Below, one piece after another: positions 13,691 to 59,850 of a DNA stretch of 64,000 bases (positions within the stretch are counted from its first letter, which is position 1; each line of letters starts with the position of its first letter). This DNA comes from Oopsacas minuta (taxonomy: Eukaryota > Animalia > Porifera). The stretch is from the NCBI GenBank assembly GCA_024704765.1, contig JAKMXF010000110.1, positions 1 through 64,000 on the forward strand, given 5' to 3'. A program made the translations under genes and the position numbers. The notes under the pieces were generated by a model that did not search any database, was not told the DNA's origin, and worked only from the letters and a program-made list of their open reading frames with translations.

Positions 13691-16028
13691 ATGGCAACCA
13701 ACGGGACAACTCTAGACTGTTTGAAACAATTTACAACAGTAGTAGCTGATACAGGAGATTTCGCAGGTAAGTGAATGAATTAGTACGTATTATCATGTAG
13801 GAAAATTATATCTAGGACCCTAGGGTCCTAGAGTGTATTTTCGCTCTAGGACCCTATATTTAGTGTATTTTAATAACTTATTATATCAGTCTAGTGTTTT
13901 TGATTTTGATTAGTTTTCAAACAGCGTCCCGGAAATAATGCCAGGCCCCTAGGGTCTTGAGAATAACTCCTCTATAATGTATACTGTGTATTTTGTAAAT
14001 GTAACGTTGATGTATTATAGCAATTGACCAATTCAAACCAACTGATGCTACAACAAATCCATCTCTATTACTGGCTGCTGCACAGCTACCAAACTATCAG
14101 CATCTAGTGACGGAGGCTATTCAATACGGGAAAGCATCTTCTCAGTAAGTTATTTGTAGTTTAAACTAAACAAGCATTACACGACTGATTTGCAACAGAT
14201 GAGTTATTAATGCTGTTGGTAATTCTAATAAAAATGTTGCAAGTACTCACATGCAAACTAAATAATTGTGAAATTTGCAAAAAAAATGTAAATCATGTTA
14301 AGTAACAAACCTTGAGAACGGACCTATTCATATAGACAACTTTTTCGAATTATACAGTATTTAGTACGAGTCTAGGAATGGTTGGAATAGGTTCTTTTGG
14401 TTAACTCTTATGATTGTGATTATAATAATTATATTTAGGAATCTGGAGGAGCAAGTGACTGCTACTATGGATAAATTGGTTAGTGAGATTATTGAAACTC
14501 AATAAAAAATACAATTTTATAATCAAATATTTCTTAGTTTGTTCTCTTCGGAGTGGAAATCCTTAAGATTGTACCCGGTAGGGTTTCTACAGAAGTTGAT
14601 GCAAGGTAGTTAAATAGTTCTCTGTAGTATGAAAATGTGTTTACTCCTTAAATACATTATTATTGACTTCCTAAGGTTATCTTTCAATAAAGATGCCAGC
14701 ATAGAGAAGGCTAGGAGTTTCATAAAGCTATACGATGAAGCTGGAATTCCAAGAGAAAGAGTTTTGATCAAACTGGGATCTACTTGGGAGGGAATTAAAG
14801 CAGCTGAGTGAGTGGCATTGTAAAATTATATTAATTATGCGAAATATCTTGTTAATAATCGTTTTATCTTCTCAAGTTATTTTAGGGAATTATATATTCA
14901 CTTTCATAGTGCCTCTCTTATTCGAAATAAGAGAGGCCACACCAATTTAATATTTTTCCAATCTAACTTGAATAAATCTTGTTCTCATAAGGAAATTGAG
15001 ATTTGTATCAAAATCTCATTTCGTTGATTCTCAATTTCGTCGGTATGTCAGTTGCATAACTATTATCTGTACTTAATAAAATTAGAGTACTAGAGAAAGA
15101 AGGAATACACTGTAATCTCACTCTTCTCTTCTCGTTTGCTCAGGTAAAGCTATGAATAAATGTTGCTAAGTGTAGTAACCAATTTATTTGTGATATCCTA
15201 ACTACTTAGGCTGTAGCTTGTGCAGAAGCTAAAGTTACCTTGATCTCTCCATTCGTTGGTCGTATCCTAGACTGGTATGTGAAGAACACAGATAAGAAAG
15301 TGTACGACCCTCCTGAAGATCCAGGTTAGAGATATAGTATCTATTCTATCATTTCAATGATATACCCAATTATAGGTTAATTGGTGAATAATGCTACATT
15401 CCTAGGTGTTGTTAGCGTAACTAAGATCTACAACTACTATAAGAAGTATGACTACAAAACAGTAGTAATGGGAGCATCATTCAGAAACACAGGTGAGATA
15501 ACAGAGTTAGCTGGATGTGATCTCCTAACTATAAACCCAGCTCTGCTGGAGAAGCTCAAACTGTCAGATGAGAAAATCGTCAGGAAGCTAGATGCTGACA
15601 AAGGTAAATATAGTACATTATCTGCTTCAGGGATTCTCAAACTCTCATGGGTTATGGCCACCCTCTGTATAAACAAGTCGATTTGTGGTTTAGGTTTGGC
15701 CACGTTTCGTCTAAATAGCAATAGAAGGTCAGTTTACCAAAAAATGACGTAAAATATCTTTCGGTCAAGTTTGGTCATTTAACTACAAACATACTGATGA
15801 GCCAGTATACCAGTTTACCTCTTATTTCTGCCCCATTATACTTATCATATTTCAATTTTAGCAAAGGAGCAGGATCATAAAAAGATAACTCTGAATGAGT
15901 CTGAATTCAGATGGCTACAGAACGAGGATACCATGGCTAATGACAAGCTGAGTGAGGGTATAAGGAAGTTTGCTGCTGATGCTATAAAGCTGGAGGATGT
16001 TATCCGTGAAAAACTAGCTAACAAATAA
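13691..16028 (+). CDS. TALDO1: Transaldolase, 9 exons, 325 aa
   Basis: Exons 13691-13766, 14021-14144, 14439-14478, 14538-14605, 14676-14807, 15086-15143, 15210-15324, 15406-15603, 15862-16028. All GT-AG, 978 nt in frame. Motifs [65 protein letters not shown]. Confidence 0.97.
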
Positions 16029-16643
16029 CGTATACTTTAGTTAGTCTCTATTAGTTATCTATATTATGAGTGAGAAATTGATTATTACTAACATTTAGAA
16101 TTTATGTGTATGTATTGTTTGAAACTAATAAAGAGATTTAGTTACTAATGTATTATAACAGTTACAGTCAAGTCTTCTGTAAGATAAGTTTCTTAATGTT
16201 CTGAACTGTAGTGTCGATGAATCTCGCTTGAGGGGGTGCACTAGGGTCTGAAATCTAAACGAATTATTAAATAATTACGTCACATCTCCATAACACATAA
16301 TATAGCCAATTGGTCCTAACTAGCCCAATATTCTAGTCAACTCCCGTTAGATCGAACACGGATATATACAAATACAGTCTAAAACCGTCAAAGTAACATA
16401 GAAATGATAGGATATATCGATTTTATTGATTTCTGCTTATAATTAATATATATTCTACACAATAATGTCAGGACAGAGAAATAAAGTCCTATAGTGAATG
16501 TTCTTATATACTTTTAGTATAGTATTTAGATAAGAAGTTTGTATACTTGGTACGCAAATATGCAGATTGCAGATTGCAAATTGGCACAAGATAAACTCTA
16601 GCTATTTCAGTTTTCTGCATTGGCCCTCAAGAATAGATTATTA

Positions 16644-19600
16644 TTATTTGTATGGAAATCTTATAGGCTTGGAGTTAATCAATTTCCATATCCTGGGTGC
16701 TTTACTATCCAAATATTGATATTTATTAATAAATAAATAAATAAAAAACAAATAACAAACTTTGTCCTCAACTTGTTGAAGTTGATTAAAGAAATCATCT
16801 GTTAGATGACACTGTAAATCTTGTTTGAACTTACTCAGTTTACTTTGGTATACCACTAAATGTCTCCATAGTAAGTAGAGTGAGCTCTCTATTATACGGG
16901 TTATCAGTGATAATTCTAACTTGCTCAATTTATCAGATTCCTGAATCTAAGATAGAATATACAATCAATAAGATTGATATGGAGAAACAGTTCGAATCTG
17001 ATTACATGACTACTTAGCCTCTACTACATAATTACTAATATTCTGTCACAAACTACGTATGAGTAGTCCATAGTTGTCAATATATCTATCCGTGAGATTT
17101 GTTGTGTGAAGATCGGTTGAATACAACTATTCGTAATTCGTAAATGACATTTTTGGCGAATAAGAAATCTGCCAACCATGATGGCACTGAATGTGTATTT
17201 CGTTATGAATGAATGTAATAATTTCAATTTCCGCTGGGCAATACTGCGATGGCTGCCACACTTTTCATTAAGGCTGTGACATAGTTATACAATTCAGAAT
17301 CAAACTTACAATAGTAGTGGTGTAATCATTTATTATCTGTAATAATGACCCGATGGAGAGAGCAGATGTATGGATTATCGGAGACATCCCTGGACCTGTG
17401 GAGAGGAAATATGAAAATCATCCAATTCTAGACAAAATCATATCCACGTAAATGGACTCTCGTTATGTAATAATAATTATAATACAAATTCTGGCTAACA
17501 ATTAGAAACATTGACCATCTCTAGAGGTTCGTATTGAGACAATCTACTGTACATGCTTCTTCAATCTACATTTACCTGAAGATCCTATAGGAGATGTGAA
17601 ATCTATATTGAATAAGATCTTTGGTGTCGTAATATCCATATCTAGCCCTAAGAGACAAGTATATAACGTAAAGGGTATAAGTGAAAAATGAAGAGAAAAA
17701 CGTGTTAAGTATGTGATCATGAAATATACGAAATCAAAACTATTATCGTAGTTTCATAGTATATTACCATCTCTATTCATTGTTACAACAGCATATCTGA
17801 GAATAGAGTTAGCTATTTGTAGCGTGAAGAGAGTAGCCTCTCTCTTGACAGTCTCTGCTTCTCTACCTTCTGGTATGGCCAATTGTTTTAGAAGATTAGA
17901 TGTGTTAGATTTGAAGCAGTAGATCGGTAGCATGTTTAGCATGAGACGCTGTACACGTAGACATAGAACTATATTAAATTACAGCAGATTAACATTATAC
18001 ACAGTAATAGCAATGCAGTTGCTTTACGACATAATGCGACTAAGCAGCGAAGCGAGCTATGAAGATTGAAGTAAGTGGTTAGAGTTCTGAAGTGTTGGCA
18101 GTAGGGTCCAAGACCCGTTGGATGTGGTGTTATGTCATTTCGAAGCAGGATTCGAGTTGTTGGTTTGAAATTTGGACTTTGCCGTGACGGCACTTTAAAA
18201 GGAAATTGTTGGGTGACAAAATTACATTGAACCAGGATAGGATAGGATATTATACCTTTGAGAGGCTCTGAAGTAGTTTCAATATCAGGATTTGTAACTG
18301 AGGCCTGTTGCATGTAGTGAGCACAGGAGAGAGACAATAGACTACTAACTAAGCTCATTTCTTGTAGCCTTTCAAGGGTAGGAGTATTCGAGTGAGAACC
18401 GAGAATAGAGAATATTATCTCTGAATGACTGTTCACTAATTTTGTAACCTACATTATATACAATTATTGAAAGGCCATACAAATTTAATCATTTGTTTTC
18501 TGTCCGATTTCCTAGGAATGGCCCGGTGATGAGGACGACATTTATCTAGCTATTTATTGTAGCAGATAGGGATATTGAGTAAATTAGCAATTTGGAGGTA
18601 CATATAAGTATTAATAGTCCGCCTGATAGATATTGTCCAAATTTATGATTTACAATCTGGGAATTTGAAAATATACGAAGTGGCTTAGAGTGTTGGTAAC
18701 GGTACTCAACATTTTCCTAAAAGTGCCGGCAGCAGAGTTGGATGTGGTTTATGGTGTTTGGATGCAGGGCTCGAGTTGTTGAAGTGGGTATTTCCATTAG
18801 ATTAGTGATTATAACCCCTTTAGATGAGGTTTTTGGTTATTTTGGGACAGGCCTTGAGGTATTGGAGTGGGAATGTGGGGTTTTCTGTTGCCGGCACTAT
18901 GAGAAGAAAATTCGGATGCCCGAAACGGCACTTTAGCCACAGCCTTGATATAATCATTAGATTGTTTGTAAATTCTCATCTGCACATATAGTACATTAAA
19001 TATTGGTACAGACGGGGACGATAAATAAGTTTCTTATTTCACATGGACTAAATACAAAGATAAATAATAACTCTAGCTCTGTAAGTTACCTGGAAAATGA
19101 TATTATAGTGTCTCTTAGCTGCGGTAGAGAGTACAGTGAGTATAAGTCTGAGAAGTGGGAACAACAGCTGTGAATATGTTTGCACAGATTTAGAATTTAC
19201 AACAGGTGATACAGGCTGTAGTACACCAACTTCTGGACGTAAGTCTATGAAACTAATAGACTTTAATACCAATTATTCTAAAGCTAATAACAATACAGTA
19301 GACTCAATTAGAGGCCAGATCATTTGATATGATTGATAGGAGAATTTTAAGACTGATTACATGGTCTATATCTGGCCAAGTGACTTGATGCACATACTGT
19401 ATATGCATGGGCGTAGTCCCAGGAGGCCTGGTCCATGAGTTTATCTAGCTGATTCGCTGGAACCTAAAGTACCAATTCAGCAGCCATCAAGGACCCAAAG
19501 TGCCGACAGTGGGGCTCAAATTTGTACAGGATCAATATGTTACCGTCCAAAAAGTGTCACCCTTTCAGTCCTTGCAAGAAAAAGTCCGGAGACAGAATTC

Positions 19601-38690: not shown

Positions 38691-40712
38691 CTAATCGTCA
38701 GAACATTCCTCATCAGATATTATATCAGGAAGTTCTATATCTTTTGTTGCTGCAAACAGTTCAGTAAGTCCTGTCAAATCCTCAAGGAAAGAAGTTTCAT
38801 TGAAAACCTGCATTAAAAAGTCAAATCCTTCATTCTTGTACTTCTCTATGACAATGCTGGAGCAGCCAGTACATGATGCGAATAGTTCTCCAATCGGCTG
38901 TACAGTTTGGAATCGAGACAGAAACCCTCGTATTTGATGCGGTATAGCACCTAGTATGCATTGTGAGTCTGCCTCCTCTCTCCCATCAGCAGGAGCTCGT
39001 CCCATAAGAGGATGTTGCAGCAGAGATACAGCTAACTCCACTGCGAGAGAAGAAGTGATGTAAGCCATGCCTGGTCTACTCACAGTGCACTGCTGATCTA
39101 GCGTTCTATCTCTAGTTGAGTTGGTAGGAGCTACGATGTCATTACAGAAGTAGCAACCAAGTTTCTCACCAGGAATAACTCTCTTCTCCCTAATGGCCTC
39201 AACTTCATCCACCACCCCACCCCTGACACCATGTCTCATCACTAGATAAGTATCAAACCCCATAGCAGCGTTAATACAAATCTTATTCAAGGCGTAACAT
39301 AGTACAGTAGGTAGCCATCTAGCCTCTCTCGTATCTAGCAGCAGAAATATAATATCATGCTGTTGTACTAAATCCTCCAATTGAGCTACATCAGATTTGA
39401 TAGCTCTTAGCTCTCCCTCACTAACTGGGTGTCCTGGCATAGGTATAGATATATTAAATCCTCTGGAAGATACACCGGGAAATATCCGTTTAAGTGCATC
39501 AGCTGCAGCCTCTGATTTGCACTTCCCCCCATTCAGTGAGTCTTCAAAAGTGAATAAACTTTGTCTTACTGGATTAGAGAATGCTACCTTACCGTTATCA
39601 ACTAATGTTATATGTCGTACACCCCAGCCTAGCAAACATCTAGCTACGTTACAGCCTAGTGTACCAGCTCCTAACAGCAAGCATCTAGCATCTCTCACGA
39701 TATTAAGGTTAAGCTCTGGTACTAGTCTCCAACGCATAAGTTTTAAATTCAAATCTACAGATTGTTCTGATAATCTCTCTGGATTCATTGTAGAACTGAG
39801 ATTGACAGATTTCGGACCTAGCTTCTGTTTGTCGTTACGTTCCCAGCCTGTGCACTTGGGGACCTCGTCCCGCTGACTCAAGTCAGGTAATACAACCTCT
39901 TCTATGTAGAGACTGTGTCCTATGTGTCTCACGCCCTCGTAAGATCTGTCTCTGAGACAGAGAACATCTATACTCTTTCCCTTCCAAATCCGGGCAGCTA
40001 GAATGAGGAGATTCCTCAGCGGCCATCCAGGGTGCTCTTCAGAGGTACACGGATCACAATAGCAGAGTATAGGCATATCTCCCTCTGAATAGAACGTACT
40101 GTGATCTGATAATTTAGCTAAATTGAATTCTCCTGAATTATTCTTGAGTAGAAAAACACCACTGAAATTATGTTGAGGGCGAAAACCATCATAAACATGA
40201 GTGAATTTCTGTATAACCTTCCCATCCCATAATTTCTCTAACATTATACACGATCGTACTGTTATAGGTTCATCTGGCATCAAGGCAGTGAAACCAAACC
40301 AAAAAGTAAAGTTGTGTTTCTTTAGGTCTGCAAAAGCGATCATCAAAAATGAGATCAATAAACTTGGATTATCAATAGCTTTGTTTGATTTTATCGCTTC
40401 CCATTTCTCTACACTTTCCTGTTCCAGCAAACTCTTTTTATCCAGCTGATTGAACTTCTCTACTGTATTAGTATTCATGATATGACCAGGTGCTTTAAAA
40501 TAATTCTGTGGTAATGATGCATCTTCCTCAAACACACTGTAATCTAAAGAAATTCTAGGATTGAATCCGATAGGATCTGAATTGGTGAATGTAGCTGATA
40601 TTGGAATCTTTGATTCATTGAGTTGTATTGTGTCTAGCTTTTTCTGTGAAAATGTATGCCAAAAACTTGAATCAAGACTGCTTGAAAATGGCATAAACTG
40701 TAATATACTCAT
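38691..40712 (-). CDS. ATG7: Autophagy E1-like enzyme ATG7, intronless (673 aa)
   Basis: N-terminal FSSSLDSSFW, VDLNLKLMRWRLVPEL, CLLLGAGTLGCNVARCLLGWG, NPVRQSLF, LGCYFCND, TRDRTLDQQCTV, and catalytic-Cys region CTGCS. Confidence 0.97.
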   Translation of the reverse strand: MSILQFMPFSSSLDSSFWHTFSQKKLDTIQLNESKIPISATFTNSDPIGFNPRISLDYSVFEEDASLPQNYFKAPGHIMNTNTVEKFNQLDKKSLLEQESVEKWEAIKSNKAIDNPSLLISFLMIAFADLKKHNFTFWFGFTALMPDEPITVRSCIMLEKLWDGKVIQKFTHVYDGFRPQHNFSGVFLLKNNSGEFNLAKLSDHSTFYSEGDMPILCYCDPCTSEEHPGWPLRNLLILAARIWKGKSIDVLCLRDRSYEGVRHIGHSLYIEEVVLPDLSQRDEVPKCTGWERNDKQKLGPKSVNLSSTMNPERLSEQSVDLNLKLMRWRLVPELNLNIVRDARCLLLGAGTLGCNVARCLLGWGVRHITLVDNGKVAFSNPVRQSLFTFEDSLNGGKCKSEAAADALKRIFPGVSSRGFNISIPMPGHPVSEGELRAIKSDVAQLEDLVQQHDIIFLLLDTREARWLPTVLCYALNKICINAAMGFDTYLVMRHGVRGGVVDEVEAIREKRVIPGEKLGCYFCNDIVAPTNSTRDRTLDQQCTVSRPGMAYITSSLAVELAVSLLQHPLMGRAPADGREEADSQCILGAIPHQIRGFLSRFQTVQPIGELFASCTGCSSIVIEKYKNEGFDFLMQVFNETSFLEDLTGLTELFAATKDIELPDIISDEECSDD

Positions 40713-44429: not shown

Positions 44430-45449
44430 ATGTGCGAAGAAATCAACACAACAAATCTTGAAATATTATCCACTGACATCCATCAAGATTACAGAATATT
44501 ATGGCACAAACGTTTGGGCAAGGGAGCAACACAAGATCCCATCTACCTAGCTACACACATCAAAACAAGGAAGAGGTTTGCAGTTAAGATGGTACTAGAC
44601 AGTACACAAGCCAGAAGAGAGATCAGTCTACAGAGGAGGTGTCAACACTCCCCACATGTCCTCTCCATTGTAGACGTGTACAGCAATGCAGCTAGTCGCA
44701 TCTCCTCCCAAAGCAGAGAGGAGCAGTATCTGTACATCGTGTTAGAAGTGATGGAAGGAGGCACTCTCTTGAGTCTCCTCGAGAAGTTTAACATCATCAC
44801 AGGAGAGAGTGGTTTGTCGGAAGTTCTTACAGCTGGCTACTTCAGACAGATTCTACTCGCTCTCTCCACTCTCCACCAACAAGGAATCATTCATAGAGAC
44901 CTCAAACCAGACAACATCCTCCTCACACACGACTACTCTATCTACGATCTGGAAGATGAAGAAGTCTGTGCAGACTTCCAACTGCAGTTAGCAGACTTTG
45001 GCTTTGCAGTGGAAGAAGCTGACAGACCCACCAAAGCTATGTACACACCCTACTATGCAGCTCCAGAAGTGCTACTCAATGATCCTCATCTAAATGTTCA
45101 CCACTTACAACATCACTCAGACACTGTTTCTACAACAACAACAACAACAACAACACTGGCCAGTTATGACTCTCGTATCGATCTGTGGTCTCTTGGTGTC
45201 ACTCTCTACATACTACTCTCCAGCACTGCCCCTTTCACCCCAGAGAGTCACACTCGCTCTGGTATAACTCCCAGTATGTATGAGTGTATCGAGAATGGAA
45301 AGTTCTCTTTCTACCATGAGTGCTGGGAAGAAGTGTCTCTAGAAGCCAAAGATCTTATAACTGGCTTGCTACAGGCAGATCCTGACAAGAGACTATCTCT
45401 ACAACAAGTCTTAGAACACCCCTGGCTTAATAATAAAATCGAAATTTAA
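44430..45449 (+). CDS. MAPKAPK5: MAPKAPK5 (MK5/PRAK)-like Ser/Thr kinase, copy A, intronless, no C-terminal regulatory tail
   Basis: YRILWHKRLGKG, FAVKMVLD..ARREI, MEGG, HRDLKPDN, DFGFA, YTPYYAAPE, DLWSLGV, HPWLN. The FTPYY-type P+1 loop is MK5-like. Confidence 0.85.
   Translation: MCEEINTTNLEILSTDIHQDYRILWHKRLGKGATQDPIYLATHIKTRKRFAVKMVLDSTQARREISLQRRCQHSPHVLSIVDVYSNAASRISSQSREEQYLYIVLEVMEGGTLLSLLEKFNIITGESGLSEVLTAGYFRQILLALSTLHQQGIIHRDLKPDNILLTHDYSIYDLEDEEVCADFQLQLADFGFAVEEADRPTKAMYTPYYAAPEVLLNDPHLNVHHLQHHSDTVSTTTTTTTTLASYDSRIDLWSLGVTLYILLSSTAPFTPESHTRSGITPSMYECIENGKFSFYHECWEEVSLEAKDLITGLLQADPDKRLSLQQVLEHPWLNNKIEI
44474..45432. repeat. Left arm of a 959-bp inverted repeat (partner 51190-52148), 3 mismatches
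   Basis: Line-by-line comparison by eye found only TCC/TCT, GTG/GTC and TTG/CTG differences. Confidence 0.95.
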
Positions 45450-46086
45450 TATTATTGTTTAGTCTATACAATTATCGTTTTAACTTCTTTTTACTTAAAT
45501 TGCTTAGTATTTCAATAAAGTCAAATATTTCAATTGTGTATTTAGTTCTATAAAGGAAAAGCTTTATCAATTGATATGTATAATGTCTGGACATGTAACC
45601 CTATATCTTTGGTTTGTAATTTACTTACAAATTTTCTTAGGACCGAACTATATTGGCAGAAACGAATAGAACTAAAGAATTAAAGTTTAATATTAACAAA
45701 TCTAGGAATTTGCGCGAATTTCTATTCGCTTTAACCATTACATTAACATATACCGTATTGCTCCGAATAAGCAAGCCCTGGCGCATAATGGTTTCGTGTA
45801 AATATTTCTTCACTTTTTGAAAATACAAAAGATTTCAGGTAACTAATTGCATAGTAAAATGTGCGTAAAATTCAACAAGGAATTGTTTTAAAATTGGAGA
45901 TAAAGTTTTATTCACAAGTTTTGGGCGTTTTTCTAGCCCAAGGAGCATATTTAGGGAAATATGCTTTTCAATTGGTGGTTGCATTTTAATACATGTCGAT
46001 AAGCCAATAACCCTTTAGCAGTGTGGGGGGTAAAAATCTTTGAAGCTATCTTATTTTTCGGATAGTAGCAAGGACGAATAATATTT

Positions 46087-46157
46087 TTTAGAAACCTTCA
46101 AGGGCGAGCTACCAATCTTGATTCTAGAATGATAGCTCGCCCTTTAAGGTTTCTAAA
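46087..46157. repeat. Hairpin with 25-bp arms (1 mismatch) and a 21-nt loop
   Basis: tttagaaaccttcaagggcgagcta ... tagctcgccctttaaggtttctaaa. Confidence 0.85.
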
Positions 46158-47812
46158 TATATTCTCAAAGGTTAGGGAAGCGCGGACAAATGACAACAAA
46201 TGAACCTTGAGAAAAGAGTGGAGAAGACAACAACAAATATTTAAATAATATAATAAATACAATATAGTATCTATGTATTGTGATTATGTAAAGTACATAG
46301 TTTAGAGCAGCAAAGTTAAACATGCTTGAGTTAAGGAGCCTGATGCAGTGATAAATAACAGATACACTGAGATAGTAAACAGAATATTATTTTAATGAGA
46401 ATGACTAGATTATGATTGGTAGTGGGTATTAGCCACAAGTAGTTTATAGAAATATTAACGCAATATAACTCCTTACAGCTGTAATTATTTCGTACGGGGA
46501 CGAGATATCGCTTATTTAGTCATGATAATCAAATTATCATTGAGTTGGAATAGACAAGGAAGAATAATTATAAAAGAGACTCAAGTCGAAAATAACACAT
46601 CACCGATTTACCAGTATTCAGTACAATATAATCACTGTATAAACGGCTAGCGGTAATATTATCTGAATTGGAATTGTTTCATTTTACATTCTGATGAATT
46701 CTGTGAATAGTATGGACGCAATAGGAAATAGAAATAACTTAATGGCTTCAAAAGTCTAGAAAATCTCTTGCTATCAATCAGTCATTTGCTATCTGTGTTT
46801 GATTAAGTACATGTATAGGAATATACTTGTTTCTCACAATCATCCTTCCAGAAATATTTTATCTGTATTTCAACAAAATTATGGATAATATAATATATTC
46901 TCGGATCAAAGAAAGTGTAATCCATATTTTACTACTTGTATAGTTGAAATATTCAATTTATATTTAGAGAGGGAATATAATGAGACAATCTAAGCATATA
47001 CAAACTAAAAGTATATACCGTCTGCTGTCCCAACTTTCGAGGAAATTACAGATTTATTTTAGGTGGCGAATATCCTACTATACCGCCCGCGGCAATTAAC
47101 ATGATATTTAGAAGATATAATTCAAGAATAATTACGTGTCCTGAATGTGTAATAATAGCACAATCACAATACTCCATGCTCCATTATGGAAAGCTATCCT
47201 ATTTTGAAAAGTGTTACAGTTAGAAGGTCAATGAATAGCGAATTACAGTTGCAAGATAGTAAGTTGTATGAATAGAAGAGTGTGTAGTTAATTTTTATAT
47301 CGTAATTAATGGAAAGGAGTGGTATGAGAAATCAATTCAAATAAATCGTTTATACTACTTGTTAAACCATATGTGATATTAGAGACAAATCTCCAAAGAC
47401 TTGTGATGTGATTTAGGATTGAATTACTGCAGCTTATTCAGTAGTTAACCAATCATTATCAAATAATTCAAATTAGTCTAGCACATATCTCCTCTCGTTG
47501 CATAACTAACCGAATTGAACAAATATACAGTTTAGTTAAACATATACAGTGCATGTGTACTATGTCATATTTTGCTCGTTAACACTTACTAATAACCATA
47601 AGCAAAATTGTAACACAGCAAAACTTCGCAGAAAACGCTTATACGCGAATTAACCAACAAGTCTAATTAGACAAATTCAACAAGAAATTTATTCAACAAC
47701 AGTGAAGTTCAGTCAAAACTGATGAAAGACACCTTTATATCAGTACCAGGTCCTACCCTTGATGCGAGTCAAAAAATTACCGCCTTAGGACCATGCCTCA
47801 ATCTAAATAGTA

Positions 47813-48205
47813 CAGTATATGCCGGATATACGAACACCAGTTGTAAGGACCTTAACTTGAATTACGAAATCTTTCGTATTCTAATCCATGGAATTTTTAC
47901 CGGATATAAGAACATTCCAGCTGGTTATAAGAACATGGCGGATATAAAACTGGAAAACGGTTGCCATACGCCCAACTATAATTTATGTCGGTTATAATAA
48001 CACTCTTAGAATAGTAGTAAAATTGTTTTTTATTACCTGTTTGTTTGTAGAATTGGCATACATTATATAGTATATATGAGAACAGTTTTCCATAATATTG
48101 TTCTCACATCCAAGTCTGGTTATATGAAGTGTTTTATACCAGGCACTCACAATTTACTACATTATGTCCAGTTCCTGACGATGTTCTTATAACCGACATC
48201 CACTC
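47813..48205. mobile_element. Tc1/mariner-like MITE (TA-flanked), degenerate
   Basis: ta|cagtatatgccggatatacgaaca ... tgttcttataaccgacatccactc|ta, with internal ggatataagaaca / ggttataagaaca repeats. Confidence 0.6.
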
Positions 48206-51181
48206 TATAGTGATTCTTATATTATAATTTCTTTATATATAAAATATCTCCACAAAAAGTGCAGCTTCAGGCAATCGCATAGTTCGCTTTGCCTGTATAC
48301 GACAAATGCTAAACTACTGCAAATGTCCGATTTGCAATTATACGTATATTTCCTGTCATAATGTATTGATTATATCCTACGTGGTTACGTTATGTTGTAA
48401 CTTAAAGGAATTTTATTCATATATGTTGAATAATTAATTTTATAGTTGGAAAAGCAGCAGAGATTCAGGGGCATGTAAATCATGTTATTCTTATGTAAGA
48501 GGAATAAAACAAAAATCAAAAATACACAAATATGCTCACACAACATTGGTTGTTTCAACATATATAATTCTTCTTTGAATTCAATTAGAAAATGAAAGGT
48601 AAGTTGAAAATAACAATTCAGCATTTTAAAATTACGTTAGAATATATTAAAAATTGGAACTGAAAATAATAAATTTTGTAAACTTATCAGATTAATTGTA
48701 ATAAAAGAATTAAATTATCACAAACATATTATCTGCATGTGTAGTATATATATAGCATGTGTAGTATATATATAGTATATATGTAGCATGTATAGTCGTG
48801 AACACAAATTGACAGCTAAGTAAAATGTTAAGGACTGAAATATGGCACGAATATTGATCAGAATCACTGTGATAATCAGCTAATGATTAGTGGACTGTTG
48901 TATCCAAAAAGGAATAACAATTCTTTTTGTGTGGACATATATTAAAGATAATTCAACCTACTAATTGCTATTAGCGTAGGAAATGTGATCATTAAGTATA
49001 ATAGCATCGTTATCAAATATTTACGAAACAAAGTAAGTCATCCCTTGAACTAAGATAAACCAAATATATTATTCCTATAGTGACTACAGAATTTAAATAT
49101 TGTTAGCAAAATATTGGGATCTAATTATCTGATAGTGATATAAGGGCTATGTAAACATTATCCAATTACACATCATATAGAAGTAGCTTCTTTACCAGAA
49201 AAGTATCCAAAAATAAACTAAACCAATTAATGTAATCATATATATCAACAGTAAGTGGAATAAACAAACTCTGCTGCTATATTGGTAAAAGTGTATATTA
49301 AGAGTTTCACTTTCAACGAACTTAACCTCGATTAAAATAGAGGTAGTAATATGTTACATCGTGATTAGTTTGAAACGTTGCGATTATTCAGCTAGTTTTG
49401 CATTCTAAAAATATCTTAAACTGGATGTTATACTTTGGAAGCTTATATGAAGGGACTCGAATTGGTAGTCGAATTATGGTTATGAATTTTATTAAACTAC
49501 AAAAGGCCAAATCACAGGTAGAGTTTGTGATTCTATAATCCAAAATACAGTTTACATTCAGTTATCATTTTAGAATATGAGTATGATCAAAGATTTCGCT
49601 CCTTTTCTGCATGTATCAACAACTTATTTCCAGAATATATCTTATTTGCATGGATAAATATTTAAATCAGGATATTTAAGCCATAGATATATTATTTTTA
49701 CTCTTGATTATGGACTAAAAAAATTTCCAGAATAAAAAAATGAAAAGAGAAGAAAAGAATTGCGTAAATGATCAAAAGTGGTTGGTCTTACCCAAGGATC
49801 AACTATAGGAACACTGTTGTAAGATATGGTAATAAAGTATTGTGAGACACAATAGTGCTGACCTGCTATGTGAAAAGAATCTTAAAATAGAATGAGCCAC
49901 ATTAAAGAGATAGGAAGTATACATGCAAGCTATAATTACAATTAATAGATTTGAATTTCCATGTGGACAAATATGCCATTCCAGATTTAGAATTTGAGAC
50001 GAATTAATTGCAGTTACGTAGATTATAGTAATTGCATCAGAGATCTACTCAGAAATATGTCAGAGAGATGTTGAGGTCAGACAACTAATATCTACGTATA
50101 TAACAAGTAGGAAATGAGAACAATCAATTTGCATGAAATACTAACTTAATTAACGAAATGATATATTCAAATTATGACAATTTTTGTGATTATTTCATGA
50201 TTTCTCATAAACAACTAAGAATCAACGCAAATGACTGAAATTAGCTGAGAAAACCTGAGATAATGGGTAATTTGGAACATACACTTTCCGAGGTAGATTT
50301 TGTCGAAAAGTGAAGAATTAATAGTCGAAGAAATCAATTTTATTCCATTTTTCAATGAATTCGCTATCCTAGATTAGTTAACCGAATACTGCCTGGAATT
50401 ATTATCATATTTTATGAATTCAAAAGCTACTAAAATCTCGTTTTTGGTTCGGGAATTGTTAAAACGAAGTGAAATTTAGTGTTCCTTTTCATTACGAACG
50501 TAACACTTCGGCCGTAAACGGTTAATTACAATTTTAACAAACTAGAAAACGTGTGTGCGAGCATACAATTAAACTTTTAAGTAAACATAAATAAGCTTCA
50601 ACAAATGTTACGAAATTGCAATCATAAATGATAACAAATAGAACTAACACAATTAATTGAAAAATCAGATTTGTTCAAGTGATATATTGTCAGCAAATAA
50701 AGGAAAATTTCTCATAAGTACTAGATGCTAGGTAAGTTAACAAATCTAATTGGCCGCAAAAATGTAACAAACACGGATTAGACACTATTGCAGATGTCTA
50801 TTGATGATATGGTATTTCATAGAAAATCTAGAGAGTGATTAATGACCTAAGTTAGCAGTTTATAAAAGATAACAACACAAGGAATAATATGCTAGAAAAT
50901 CAATTTCATTTCACACAACCTCCAAATTAGTTTGAACAAAAGAATGATTAGAATTAAATTAAGAATTAATTAATAAGATTTCGTTAATAAATTTGAAAGA
51001 TGAAAATTAATAAAACAAATTTTTTTGAATTTAATAAGACATGACGTCATGTATACTATATCCTACAAATGTCAACAAATAAATGAAATTAAAATAATTA
51101 GTTGGAAAACATTTTTACATATGGATAAGCAAGAAATATACTAGAATCTATGAAATAGCATGCTAAACACTAATAAATTAG

Positions 51182-52198
51182 CTAACTGCTATTAAGCCAG
51201 GGGTGTTCTAAGACTTGTTGTAGAGATAGTCTCTTGTCAGGATCTGCCTGTAGCAGGCCAGTTATAAGATCTTTGGCTTCTAGAGACACTTCTTCCCAGC
51301 ACTCATGGTAGAAAGAGAACTTTCCATTCTCGATACACTCATACATACTGGGAGTTATACCAGAGCGAGTGTGACTCTCTGGGGTGAAAGGGGCAGTGCT
51401 GGAGAGTAGTATGTAGAGAGTGACACCAAGAGACCACAGATCGATACGAGAGTCATAACTGGCCAGTGTTGTTGTTGTTGTTGTTGTTGTAGAAACAGTG
51501 TCTGAGTGATGTTGTAAGTGGTGAACATTTAGATGAGGATCATTGAGTAGCACTTCTGGAGCTGCATAGTAGGGTGTGTACATAGCTTTGGTGGGTCTGT
51601 CAGCTTCTTCGACTGCAAAGCCAAAGTCTGCTAACTGCAGTTGGAAGTCTGCACAGACTTCTTCATCTTCCAGATCGTAGATAGAGTAGTCGTGTGTGAG
51701 GAGGATGTTGTCTGGTTTGAGGTCTCTATGAATGATTCCTTGTTGGTGGAGAGTGGAGAGAGCGAGTAGAATCTGTCTGAAGTAGCCAGCTGTAAGAACT
51801 TCCGACAAACCACTCTCTCCTGTGATGATGTTAAACTTCTCGAGGAGACTCAAGAGAGTGCCTCCTTCCATCACTTCTAACACGATGTACAGATACTGCT
51901 CCTCTCTGCTTTGGGAAGAGATGCGACTAGCTGCATTGCTGTACACGTCTACAATGGAGAGGACATGTGGGGAGTGTTGACACCTCCTCTGTAGACTGAT
52001 CTCTCTTCTGGCTTGTGTACTGTCTAGTACCATCTTAACTGCAAACCTCTTCCTTGTTTTGATGTGTGTAGCTAGGTAGATGGGATCTTGTGTTGCTCCC
52101 TTGCCCAAACGTTTGTGCCATAATATTCTGTAATCTTGATGGATGTCACGTAAATTTATTCTGAATTCCCGTAGGAAATAAGTATGGAGAACTGACAT
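51182..52198 (-). CDS. MAPKAPK5: MAPKAPK5-like kinase, copy B (core protein identical to copy A; N-terminus may instead be spliced)
   Basis: ORF is identical to copy A from DIHQDY to HPWLN. Termini are unique (MSVLHTYFLREFRINLR and SS*). Confidence 0.85.
   Translation of the reverse strand: MSVLHTYFLREFRINLRDIHQDYRILWHKRLGKGATQDPIYLATHIKTRKRFAVKMVLDSTQARREISLQRRCQHSPHVLSIVDVYSNAASRISSQSREEQYLYIVLEVMEGGTLLSLLEKFNIITGESGLSEVLTAGYFRQILLALSTLHQQGIIHRDLKPDNILLTHDYSIYDLEDEEVCADFQLQLADFGFAVEEADRPTKAMYTPYYAAPEVLLNDPHLNVHHLQHHSDTVSTTTTTTTTLASYDSRIDLWSLGVTLYILLSSTAPFTPESHTRSGITPSMYECIENGKFSFYHECWEEVSLEAKDLITGLLQADPDKRLSLQQVLEHPWLNSS
51190..52148. repeat. Right arm of the 959-bp inverted repeat
   Basis: Reverse complement of 44474-45432 with 3 substitutions. 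Confidence 0.95.
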
Positions 52199-58659: not shown

Positions 58660-59850
58660 ATGGACTCAATCGAAATAAAAACAACAAAACTTGAAGATTA
58701 CTACAGGATATTCTGGAGTGATAAGATTGGCTCTGGGGCTAATGGAAATGTATATTCATGTCTGTGCAAGAAGACATGGAAAAACTATGCAGTAAAAATT
58801 ATACCTGACAGGCCGAGAGCTAGAAGAGAAATAGAAATGCAAATGGCATGCCAAAGCTCCAGATACGTCGTCCCGATTTTCGATGTATACAGTAACTCCT
58901 GTGAGAAACTAAACAAAAATAAACGGAACAAGTACATATTTATTATCATGGAGAATATGCGAGGAGGAGAGCTATTCAGTTTGATAGAAAATCACAGTGA
59001 TGTTTTGAATGAGGCGCATTGGTGTAAGATCATAAAGCAAATAGTGTTGGGGCTAAAAGATATTCATGAACTAGGTATCATACATCGAGATTTAAAACCA
59101 GAAAATATATTTATAAAAGACGACTACAGCATTAATCAATTCTCTTCAGTAGATGAAACTGTCAACGATATGGAGATTATGATCGGGGACTTTGGCTTTG
59201 CTGTAGAGGCACACACCAGACCATGTGAAGCTCTCTTCACTCCATATTATGTAGCACCTGAAATATTAGCAAACGACCTGAGATATCGTGATGAGAGTGA
59301 AGATAAGTTACAGACGCCTTATGACTCAAGATGTGACATGTGGTCCCTGGGTGTAGTAATGTACGCATTAATCTCAAATATACCTCCCTTTTATCCGGAA
59401 ATACATTCCAAAACAATGACAAAACGAATGTACAATAACATACTAACGGGTACATTCCATTTCCAGTACAATATATGGAAGAGCATATCCTATGAAGTTA
59501 AAGAGCTCATTTCAGATTTAGTACAAGTCAATCCTGATGATAGAGTGACAATGGAAGAAGTGATGCAGCACTCTTGGTTCAAAAACATGGGTAATGCATT
59601 CGAATCTGAACAATCAACCTTATCTGAAGTGTCGTTAGGGGGTTTATGTGGAATTCACGACAAAATGCTGAAATCAGGTAGCCATACCGATAGCGAAACA
59701 AAAGAGTACAATTTCAGCTGGATAGCAAGTAGCTCAAATGACTCAGAGAGCAGTGACGTAGAATTCACAGACAATGGCAAATACACTGTTAGACTTATAA
59801 TACAATTAGACAATACATGGGCACAAAGGAGGTTACCTATTATCCATTGA
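58660..59850 (+). CDS. MAPKAPK5: MAPKAPK5-like kinase, divergent copy C, intronless (396 aa)
   Basis: YRIFWSDKIGSGANG, YAVKIIPDRPRARRE, MRGGELF, HRDLKPEN, DFGFA, LFTPYYVAPE, DMWSLGVVMY..PPFY, followed by a Ser/acidic tail. Confidence 0.9.
   Translation: MDSIEIKTTKLEDYYRIFWSDKIGSGANGNVYSCLCKKTWKNYAVKIIPDRPRARREIEMQMACQSSRYVVPIFDVYSNSCEKLNKNKRNKYIFIIMENMRGGELFSLIENHSDVLNEAHWCKIIKQIVLGLKDIHELGIIHRDLKPENIFIKDDYSINQFSSVDETVNDMEIMIGDFGFAVEAHTRPCEALFTPYYVAPEILANDLRYRDESEDKLQTPYDSRCDMWSLGVVMYALISNIPPFYPEIHSKTMTKRMYNNILTGTFHFQYNIWKSISYEVKELISDLVQVNPDDRVTMEEVMQHSWFKNMGNAFESEQSTLSEVSLGGLCGIHDKMLKSGSHTDSETKEYNFSWIASSSNDSESSDVEFTDNGKYTVRLIIQLDNTWAQRRLPIIH

Follow-up and report, generated by a model that had tools for sequence, protein, structure and literature searches.

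A tail-to-tail kinase gene pair of glass sponges with kinase cores in likely concerted evolution and separately inherited flanks

Introduction

Palindromes of the primate Y and X chromosomes (Rozen et al. 2003) reportedly have arms that are more than 99.9% identical by intrachromosomal gene conversion on either side of a unique spacer, with arm identity higher within a species than between species; the arms are said to measure from 9 kb to 1.45 Mb and to include non-coding DNA and whole genes. In Drosophila, the palindromic linked paralogues Amy-p and Amy-d stem from a duplication older than the species, and each paralogue resembles its partner in the same species more than its orthologue in another (Hickey et al. 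1991; Shibata & Yamazaki 1995; PMC3924832). Their concerted evolution is limited to the coding region, the flanks evolving independently (PMC3924832). The palindromic pairs Hsp70Aa/Ab and Hsp70Ba/Bb also predate speciation, are homogenised by ectopic conversion and share silent polymorphisms (Bettencourt & Feder 2002; PMC3924832), and inverted orientation favours conversion over copy-number change (PMC3924832). Here we analyse two tail-to-tail kinase genes, A and B, of the glass sponge Oopsacas minuta. They lie within positions 1-64,000 of one contig of its assembly, and this whole stretch of 64,000 nucleotides (nt) is called the window below.

For this pair the original prediction, made from the letters of the window, had offered ‘gene conversion or invertible cassette’. 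The trees obtained here from seven genomes favour the first part, and the constant orientation of the spacer speaks against the second. We conclude, with a probability of about 0.9, that A and B are an ancient tail-to-tail duplicate pair whose kinase core of ~0.95 kb is in concerted evolution by repeated non-crossover ectopic gene conversion between the inverted arms.

Results

Two inverted genes identical only across the kinase core

A repeat search within 42-54.5 kb of the window gave a single long inverted repeat, with 5757 nt separating its arms. The left arm (44474-45432, plus strand, 959 nt; found by repeat search and pairwise alignment) is the putatively converted core of kinase gene A (44430-45449, plus strand), an intronless, MAPKAPK-like open reading frame (ORF) of 339 amino acids (aa) on the side of an ATG7 homologue. 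The right arm (51190-52148, minus strand, 959 nt; found by repeat search, alignment and genome search) is the corresponding core of kinase gene B (51182-52198, minus strand), again an intronless MAPKAPK-like ORF, of 338 aa, on the side of a third kinase gene, C.

Aligned arm to arm, the two copies show 3 mismatches (window positions 44705, 45011 and 45366) and no gaps. Over 318 codons this amounts to three synonymous differences and no non-synonymous one, and an (ACA)8 run is equally long in both arms (45132-45155 and 51467-51490). Identity begins at the last base of the codon preceding the D of DIHQDY and stops one base past the N codon of HPWLN; the translations of the two ORFs are identical from the first motif to the second and unrelated on either side. 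Outside the block lie the A-specific N-terminal codons (44430-44473, plus strand), unrelated to the B tail in alignment, and the B-specific ones (52149-52198, minus strand), recognised by alignment, tail type and flank tree. The flanks of the two paralogues align at ~40% identity, which is background. Each arm spans positions 5-263 of the 263 of the Pfam Pkinase profile (E 1e-50). What the original prediction had described at this level is accurate: the 959-bp inverted copies with three synonymous differences, the microsatellite of the same length in both, the 5757-bp spacer between tail-to-tail kinases, the identity ending at the edges of the kinase core and the unrelated N-termini, C-termini and flanks all came out of the repeat search, the gap-free alignment, the codon comparison and the ORF translations.

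Two candidate explanations of the block were rejected. A mobile-element origin of the arm does not agree with its copy number: a search of the genome (61.46 Mb, 365 contigs) found two copies of the arm DNA, both at this locus, and the sole dispersed repeats are two short old families in the spacer. Splice sites were discarded as the cause of the block edges: each ORF is complete and free of introns, a full-length type-A ORF also occurs in the Vazella pourtalesii transcriptome, and a reading of the alignment turned up no splice-site dinucleotides at the two edges.

Cores pair by genome and flanks group by type

Corresponding loci were taken from six other glass-sponge assemblies: ERZ25069837 (locus L017), ERZ25071281 (L023), ERZ25766962 (L018), ERZ25072730 (L020 and L021), ERZ20067936 (L022) and ERZ25072740 (L019, L024 and L025). 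Two sets of contigs, L020/L021 and L024/L025, are haplotig-like pairs. Both gene copies are present in all six assemblies, and the order kinase A (plus), spacer, kinase B (minus), tail-to-tail, is found in 7/7 genomes with a spacer length of 5.3-7.0 kb across all taxa. In each genome A and B have a single block in common, 903-959 nt long and 96.8-99.9% identical, beyond which the flanks are unrelated. Its edges lie at identical codons throughout the seven, the D or N of (D/N)IH at the start and HPWL at the end.

Between taxa, the core DNA is only 69-95% identical, with third-position distances of 0.10-0.45 (0.24-0.45 between the window and the other taxa). This is ordinary orthologous divergence, because the single-copy neighbour ATG7 diverges about equally: 78.6% nt identity for ATG7 and ~81% for the kinase core between the window and L017, 73.8% and ~76-77% between the window and L019.

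Could purifying selection or codon bias alone preserve the identity of the cores, without any exchange of DNA? The kinase domain is indeed constrained, and its amino-acid distance between taxa is smaller than its third-position distance. The pattern at synonymous sites nevertheless refutes this explanation, since these sites are themselves homogenised: within the genome the two copies differ at 3 of 318 codons, whereas third-position distances to other taxa amount to 0.24-0.45. The variable microsatellite insert, equally long in both arms, and the core tree, which groups by genome and not by gene type, also stand against it, and we consider its chance practically nil.

In this maximum-likelihood tree of 14 cores the two copies are sisters in 7/7 genomes with 100% support. 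Forcing the B cores into one clade costs 1698 log-likelihood units and is rejected (approximately unbiased test, p-AU 0.0002). The flanks give the opposite grouping. Trees of the 160 nt upstream and of the 200 nt downstream of the block each need a single A/B label change, and none of 500 label shuffles was as low; support is 91/96 for a group of five of the B upstream flanks and 80/88 for the B group downstream. Two conserved types are likewise recognised among the N-terminal peptides, A (..EILS.DIH) and B (MS..H.Y.LRE.RIN..DIH), and the upstream DNA is type-specific and aligns type to type across taxa, the B upstream region of the window being alignable with L017 and L023 for ~180 nt past the start codon.

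Because the core tree pairs by genome and the flanks group by type, the genes duplicated before the lineages separated, and homogenisation of the core has since recurred in every lineage. As the comparison shows, the two genes have become different in their promoters and 5′ regions, in 15-17 codons at the N-terminus, in 2-6 codons at the C-terminus and in their 3′ flanks, and these parts descend as two orthologous types, A and B. In every genome the two cores are nearly identical, at synonymous sites too. The comparison also shows that the duplication predates the separation of O. minuta from five or more other glass-sponge taxa; for a sixth taxon this is probable. The original prediction had proposed to check whether paralogues are closer than orthologues within a species while their flanks are orthologous, and this is what the seven genomes display when the core tree is set against flanks, N-tails and available synteny. 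The contrast between the core tree and the type-wise flanks gives strong support to its claim that the paralogues are old and that ongoing gene conversion from arm to arm homogenises them. Its argument that a simple recent segmental duplication should carry its flanks, and so does not fit, also stands, as identity stops inside the ORF and both copies occur in six relatives.

The very high identity within each genome might still signal youth, if a fresh inverted copy of the core had arisen in every lineage through birth and death of duplicates, and an extra tandem copy in ERZ25072740 (see below) demonstrates that duplication does happen at the locus. Such a history would need the same codon-level breakpoints, the same orientation, a similar spacer length and both flank types in every lineage. 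It is moreover contradicted by the N-tails and upstream regions of types A and B, which are orthologous across taxa, and we find recent independent duplications scarcely credible.

An artefact of assembly or polishing, in which truly more divergent arms were collapsed or cross-polished, merits even less credit. The O. minuta assembly was polished with short reads, Pilon and GapFiller (PMC10280926), and one related contig (L016, see below) is in all probability a palindromic assembly artefact. The same bounded block is nonetheless found in seven assemblies from different assemblers, as judged from their different styles of contig names, and separate assembly of the arms is evident from their three single-nucleotide differences and unique flanks.

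Synteny around the pair and an additional copy

Synteny was scored only where a fetched locus reaches the side in question; the remaining sides lie beyond the fetched DNA. The anchor on the A side is the ATG7 homologue (38691-40712, minus strand), a 673-aa ORF that aligns with ATG7_N+ThiF genes located beside gene A and is 74-79% identical in nt to such 673-aa genes in L017 and L019. ATG7, on the minus strand, adjoins A in the window, L017 and L019/L025. On the B side the anchor is kinase C (58660-59850, plus strand), an unconverted paralogue of 396 aa with 42% aa identity to gene A. Its orthologue adjoins B in the window, L018, L020, L023 and L024 (390-402 aa in L023, L020 and L024, a 394-aa kinase in L018), and between the window and L023 or L020 kinase C shows 70-72% DNA identity. 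The arrangement with ATG7 at A and kinase C at B holds at every locus reaching that side, except L022.

Locus L019 was considered as a tandem (direct) arrangement contradicting the fixed orientation. This was rejected: once extended, the locus proved to contain a normal tail-to-tail pair, A2/B, with an additional copy, A1, lying upstream of it, and all copies are intact. A1, the third copy of ERZ25072740 (L019:10001-11020, the second L019 copy being at 15715-16743), adjoins a DDE_3 transposase ORF and a 420-aa ORF without Pfam match. Because its core is 98-99% identical to those of A2 and B, conversion in this assembly would seem to act between direct repeats as well. Among five sequences from the two haplotig-like contigs of ERZ25072740, two sites are polymorphic in A2, each state being shared with another paralogue, and four sites are fixed B-specific differences. 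These shared states and fixed differences hint at ongoing but incomplete exchange.

A contig of Vazella pourtalesii carrying a type-B gene (L016:1-11280, ERZ26869290 ctg358034) was dropped as a further example, being a probable assembly artefact. Perfect nested palindromes form a zig-zag along it, their arms (2791, 1545 and 797 nt) being 100% identical, and fold-back in long-read assembly is the most likely origin.

The spacer keeps one orientation

A crossover between inverted repeats inverts the intervening spacer (PMC3924832), and arms of 959 nt that are 99.7% identical lend themselves well to homologous crossover. The second part of the original prediction was a possible flip-flop kinase locus, in which an arm crossover would invert the spacer and swap C-termini and 3′ untranslated regions (UTRs); if such crossovers were regular, both orientations of the 5.7-kb spacer would coexist. 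Such a locus is physically possible, yet we regard it as very unlikely, and the comparison of spacers and flanks lends it no support.

The non-coding spacer (45433-51189, 5757 nt) contains three colinear conserved patches (48502-48731, 49060-49324 and 49402-49434, plus strand) that show how it is oriented with respect to the Vazella-like loci L017 and L023. They match these two loci on the plus strand with E 1e-11 and 2e-9. Plus-strand bits total 334 and 236, whereas the minus strand, with 25 and 0, gives essentially no signal. The spacer has the same orientation in the window, L017 and L023 (L017 against L023 included), in L018 compared with L020, and in L025 compared with L018 and L020, and both haplotig comparisons, L020/L021 and L024/L025, are colinear. 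A second orientation appeared in none of the four informative between-taxon and two haplotig comparisons. Across deep clades (the window or L017/L023 against L018/L020/L022) the spacers gave only noise, which is uninformative on orientation. If the two orientations were at a 50:50 equilibrium, four independent between-taxon comparisons would yield this result with a chance of ~6%.

Other features of the locus point the same way as this constancy. The type of the 3′ flank stays linked to that of the 5′ flank in all taxa. No ORF of recombinase size was found near the pair, the largest other ORF in 41-55.5 kb having 107 aa. An inversion would swap only 2-6 C-terminal codons and the 3′ UTRs, and the spacer offers neither conserved coding sequence nor a known RNA for inversion to regulate: tblastx against the other taxa found no protein-level conservation, and a comparison with Rfam gave 0 matches. 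Frequent flipping of the spacer is thus disfavoured, on evidence from between-taxon and haplotig comparisons, which does not bear on rare or somatic inversion within O. minuta.

A functional element in the spacer was rejected on the same lack of Rfam matches and protein conservation, just three short colinear patches being common with L017/L023. The spacer also contains members of two dispersed repeat families, one at 47808-48229 (~400 nt, at least 30 genomic copies at 70-80% identity) and one at 50372-50528 (~150 nt, at least 8 copies at 82-83%). A near-perfect hairpin at 46087-46157, with 35 nt at 89% complementarity and a 1-nt loop, is unique in the genome.

GC enrichment of the core

The arms have a GC content of 0.457 against 0.30-0.32 in flanks and spacer, in a window of ~33% GC. 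Genes A and B, with GC 0.445-0.451 and a GC at third codon positions (GC3) of ~0.447, rank highest among 13 family members in O. minuta, the others having GC3 0.30-0.44. At L018, L020, L022 and L024 the pair reaches GC3 0.60-0.64 against 0.41-0.51 in neighbouring genes; at L017 and L023 its GC3 is 0.49-0.50 and not above that of the neighbours. GC-biased conversion may have raised the GC and GC3 of the core as a side effect.

A MAPKAPK-like family with further inverted pairs

The closest proteins to A and B (83-69% identity) were found in ENA assemblies and, within EukProt, in the transcriptome of the glass sponge Vazella pourtalesii, which contains a complete type-A ORF of 341 aa. Named matches are more distant (33-37% identity) and are metazoan MAP kinase-activated protein kinase 2. 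In the PDB, the kinase domain is matched best by human MK3 and MK2 (3r1n and 1kwp, E 1e-41 to 1e-39).

The C-terminal regulatory extension of MK2 consists of an autoinhibitory helix, nuclear export and nuclear localisation signals and a p38-docking motif. It is missing from the sponge proteins, and for this reason we term A and B MAPKAPK-like, and not members of the MAPKAPK family. Their kinase domain is of CAMK type and matches human MAPKAPK2/MAPKAPK3 (MK2/MK3) best, but at only ~33-37% identity, and unlike MK2 the sponge ORFs terminate 2-6 residues after HPWL, the end of the Pkinase profile. They also differ from MK2/MK3 by an insert of ~29 aa with a Thr run after APEVL. In MK2, Thr222 is the activation-loop threonine phosphorylated by p38; in the MK3 alignment, which compares sequences only, a gap or a Lys stands near this position and a Thr lies two residues upstream (RPTKAMYTPYY).

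The Thr-run insert, between APEVL and SYD (window 45075-45161 and its counterpart in the right arm), is partly encoded by the (ACA)8 run. It varies in length and sequence among taxa. The two copies of a genome agree in 4/6 A/B pairs, and their lengths differ in L023 and L022.

The intronless MAPKAPK-like family is expanded in O. minuta, with at least 13 members at 37-46% identity, 6 of them on this contig. Counting the pair of the window, three inverted kinase pairs with near-identical blocks are found in the genome. On contig C33, a tail-to-tail MAPKAPK-like pair (862982-863602, plus strand, and 871252-871872, minus strand; L010:1787-2407 and L012:1503-2123), ~7.6 kb apart, has a 621-nt block at 100% identity over the 3′ two-thirds of the genes, and its plus-strand copy carries an in-frame TAG. 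Here the same process appears to have acted over part of the gene only. On contig C110, of which the window is the first part, a head-to-head kinase pair (~87.1-87.6 kb, minus strand, and ~90.4-90.8 kb, plus strand; L007:1738-2207 and L008:1661-2127) shares a 470-nt inverted block at 98.3% identity.

Discussion

Concerted evolution of the core by gene conversion between the inverted arms could proceed as follows. A break in one arm would be repaired with the other arm as template, on the same chromatid or on its sister, and in most cases no crossover would result. The conversion tract would be unable to pass the points where homology was lost before the lineages split, and purifying selection on the kinase domain would preserve enough homology for conversion to go on. 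The result would be one catalytic core expressed from two different contexts of promoter, UTR and N-tail.

Several points weigh against this interpretation. The first is L022, the most distant taxon, where the B-side neighbour is an ABC transporter and the B-type N-tail is unrecognisable; its pair may have arisen by an independent duplication. The support of the flank trees is moderate, the A|B split receiving 43/26 upstream and 80/88 downstream. The GC3 excess could reflect expression level instead of biased conversion. The mechanism is read from a pattern in assemblies and not from populations or from a conversion event itself. Finally, short-read polishing could erase a few true differences between the arms of O. 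minuta, although it cannot create the pattern of six other assemblies.

A bolder version of the conversion account is, in our opinion, possible but doubtful. The pair may have been converting uninterrupted, with codon-exact edges, over the whole sampled glass-sponge radiation, possibly for hundreds of millions of years, its edges held by selection for two N-tail and promoter contexts sharing one core, and inverted pairing with conversion may be recurrent in this kinase family. If true, the pair would be among the longest-lived two-copy concerted-evolution systems known and would provide a natural test of theories on the persistence of conversion.

The pattern has practical consequences. Gene trees and orthology calls for these kinases falsely suggest lineage-specific recent duplications unless the flanks are used, a warning for the annotation of the expanded intronless MAPKAPK-like family of glass sponges. 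The locus also illustrates cleanly, across several species of a little-studied group of non-bilaterian animals, conversion between palindromic genes that is limited to coding sequence. Because its block edges are stable to the codon and its core is GC-enriched in an AT-rich genome, the pair should be useful for questions on the duration of concerted evolution, the fixation of tract boundaries and GC-biased conversion in sponges.

Set beside the systems described at the outset, the sponge pair resembles the primate palindromes in having inverted arms, a unique spacer and an arm identity higher within than between species. It differs from them in size and extent, its arm measuring 0.96 kb and ending inside the ORF; because of this position of the arm ends, the two sponge genes keep different ends and promoters. 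With Hsp70 it shares a palindromic pair older than speciation and subject to ectopic conversion, and the argument from inverted orientation applies to it too. Unlike in Hsp70, the evidence for shared polymorphism is thin, amounting to 2 sites in one related taxon, and nothing suggests that selection for high dosage drives the identity. The likeness to Amy is the most extensive: palindromic paralogues a few kb apart, an old duplication, paralogues more similar than orthologues and homogenisation limited to coding sequence. Unlike Amy, the sponge genes are kinases of a glass sponge, arranged tail-to-tail, and the homogenised block leaves out the first 15-17 and the last 2-6 codons. The edges of the sponge block are constant in all sampled taxa, at third-position divergences of up to 0.45, so that the time span covered, though undated, is probably much deeper than that of the melanogaster subgroup. 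The sponge pair is a case of a known process, coding-limited conversion of the Amy/Hsp70 type, and not of a new mechanism.

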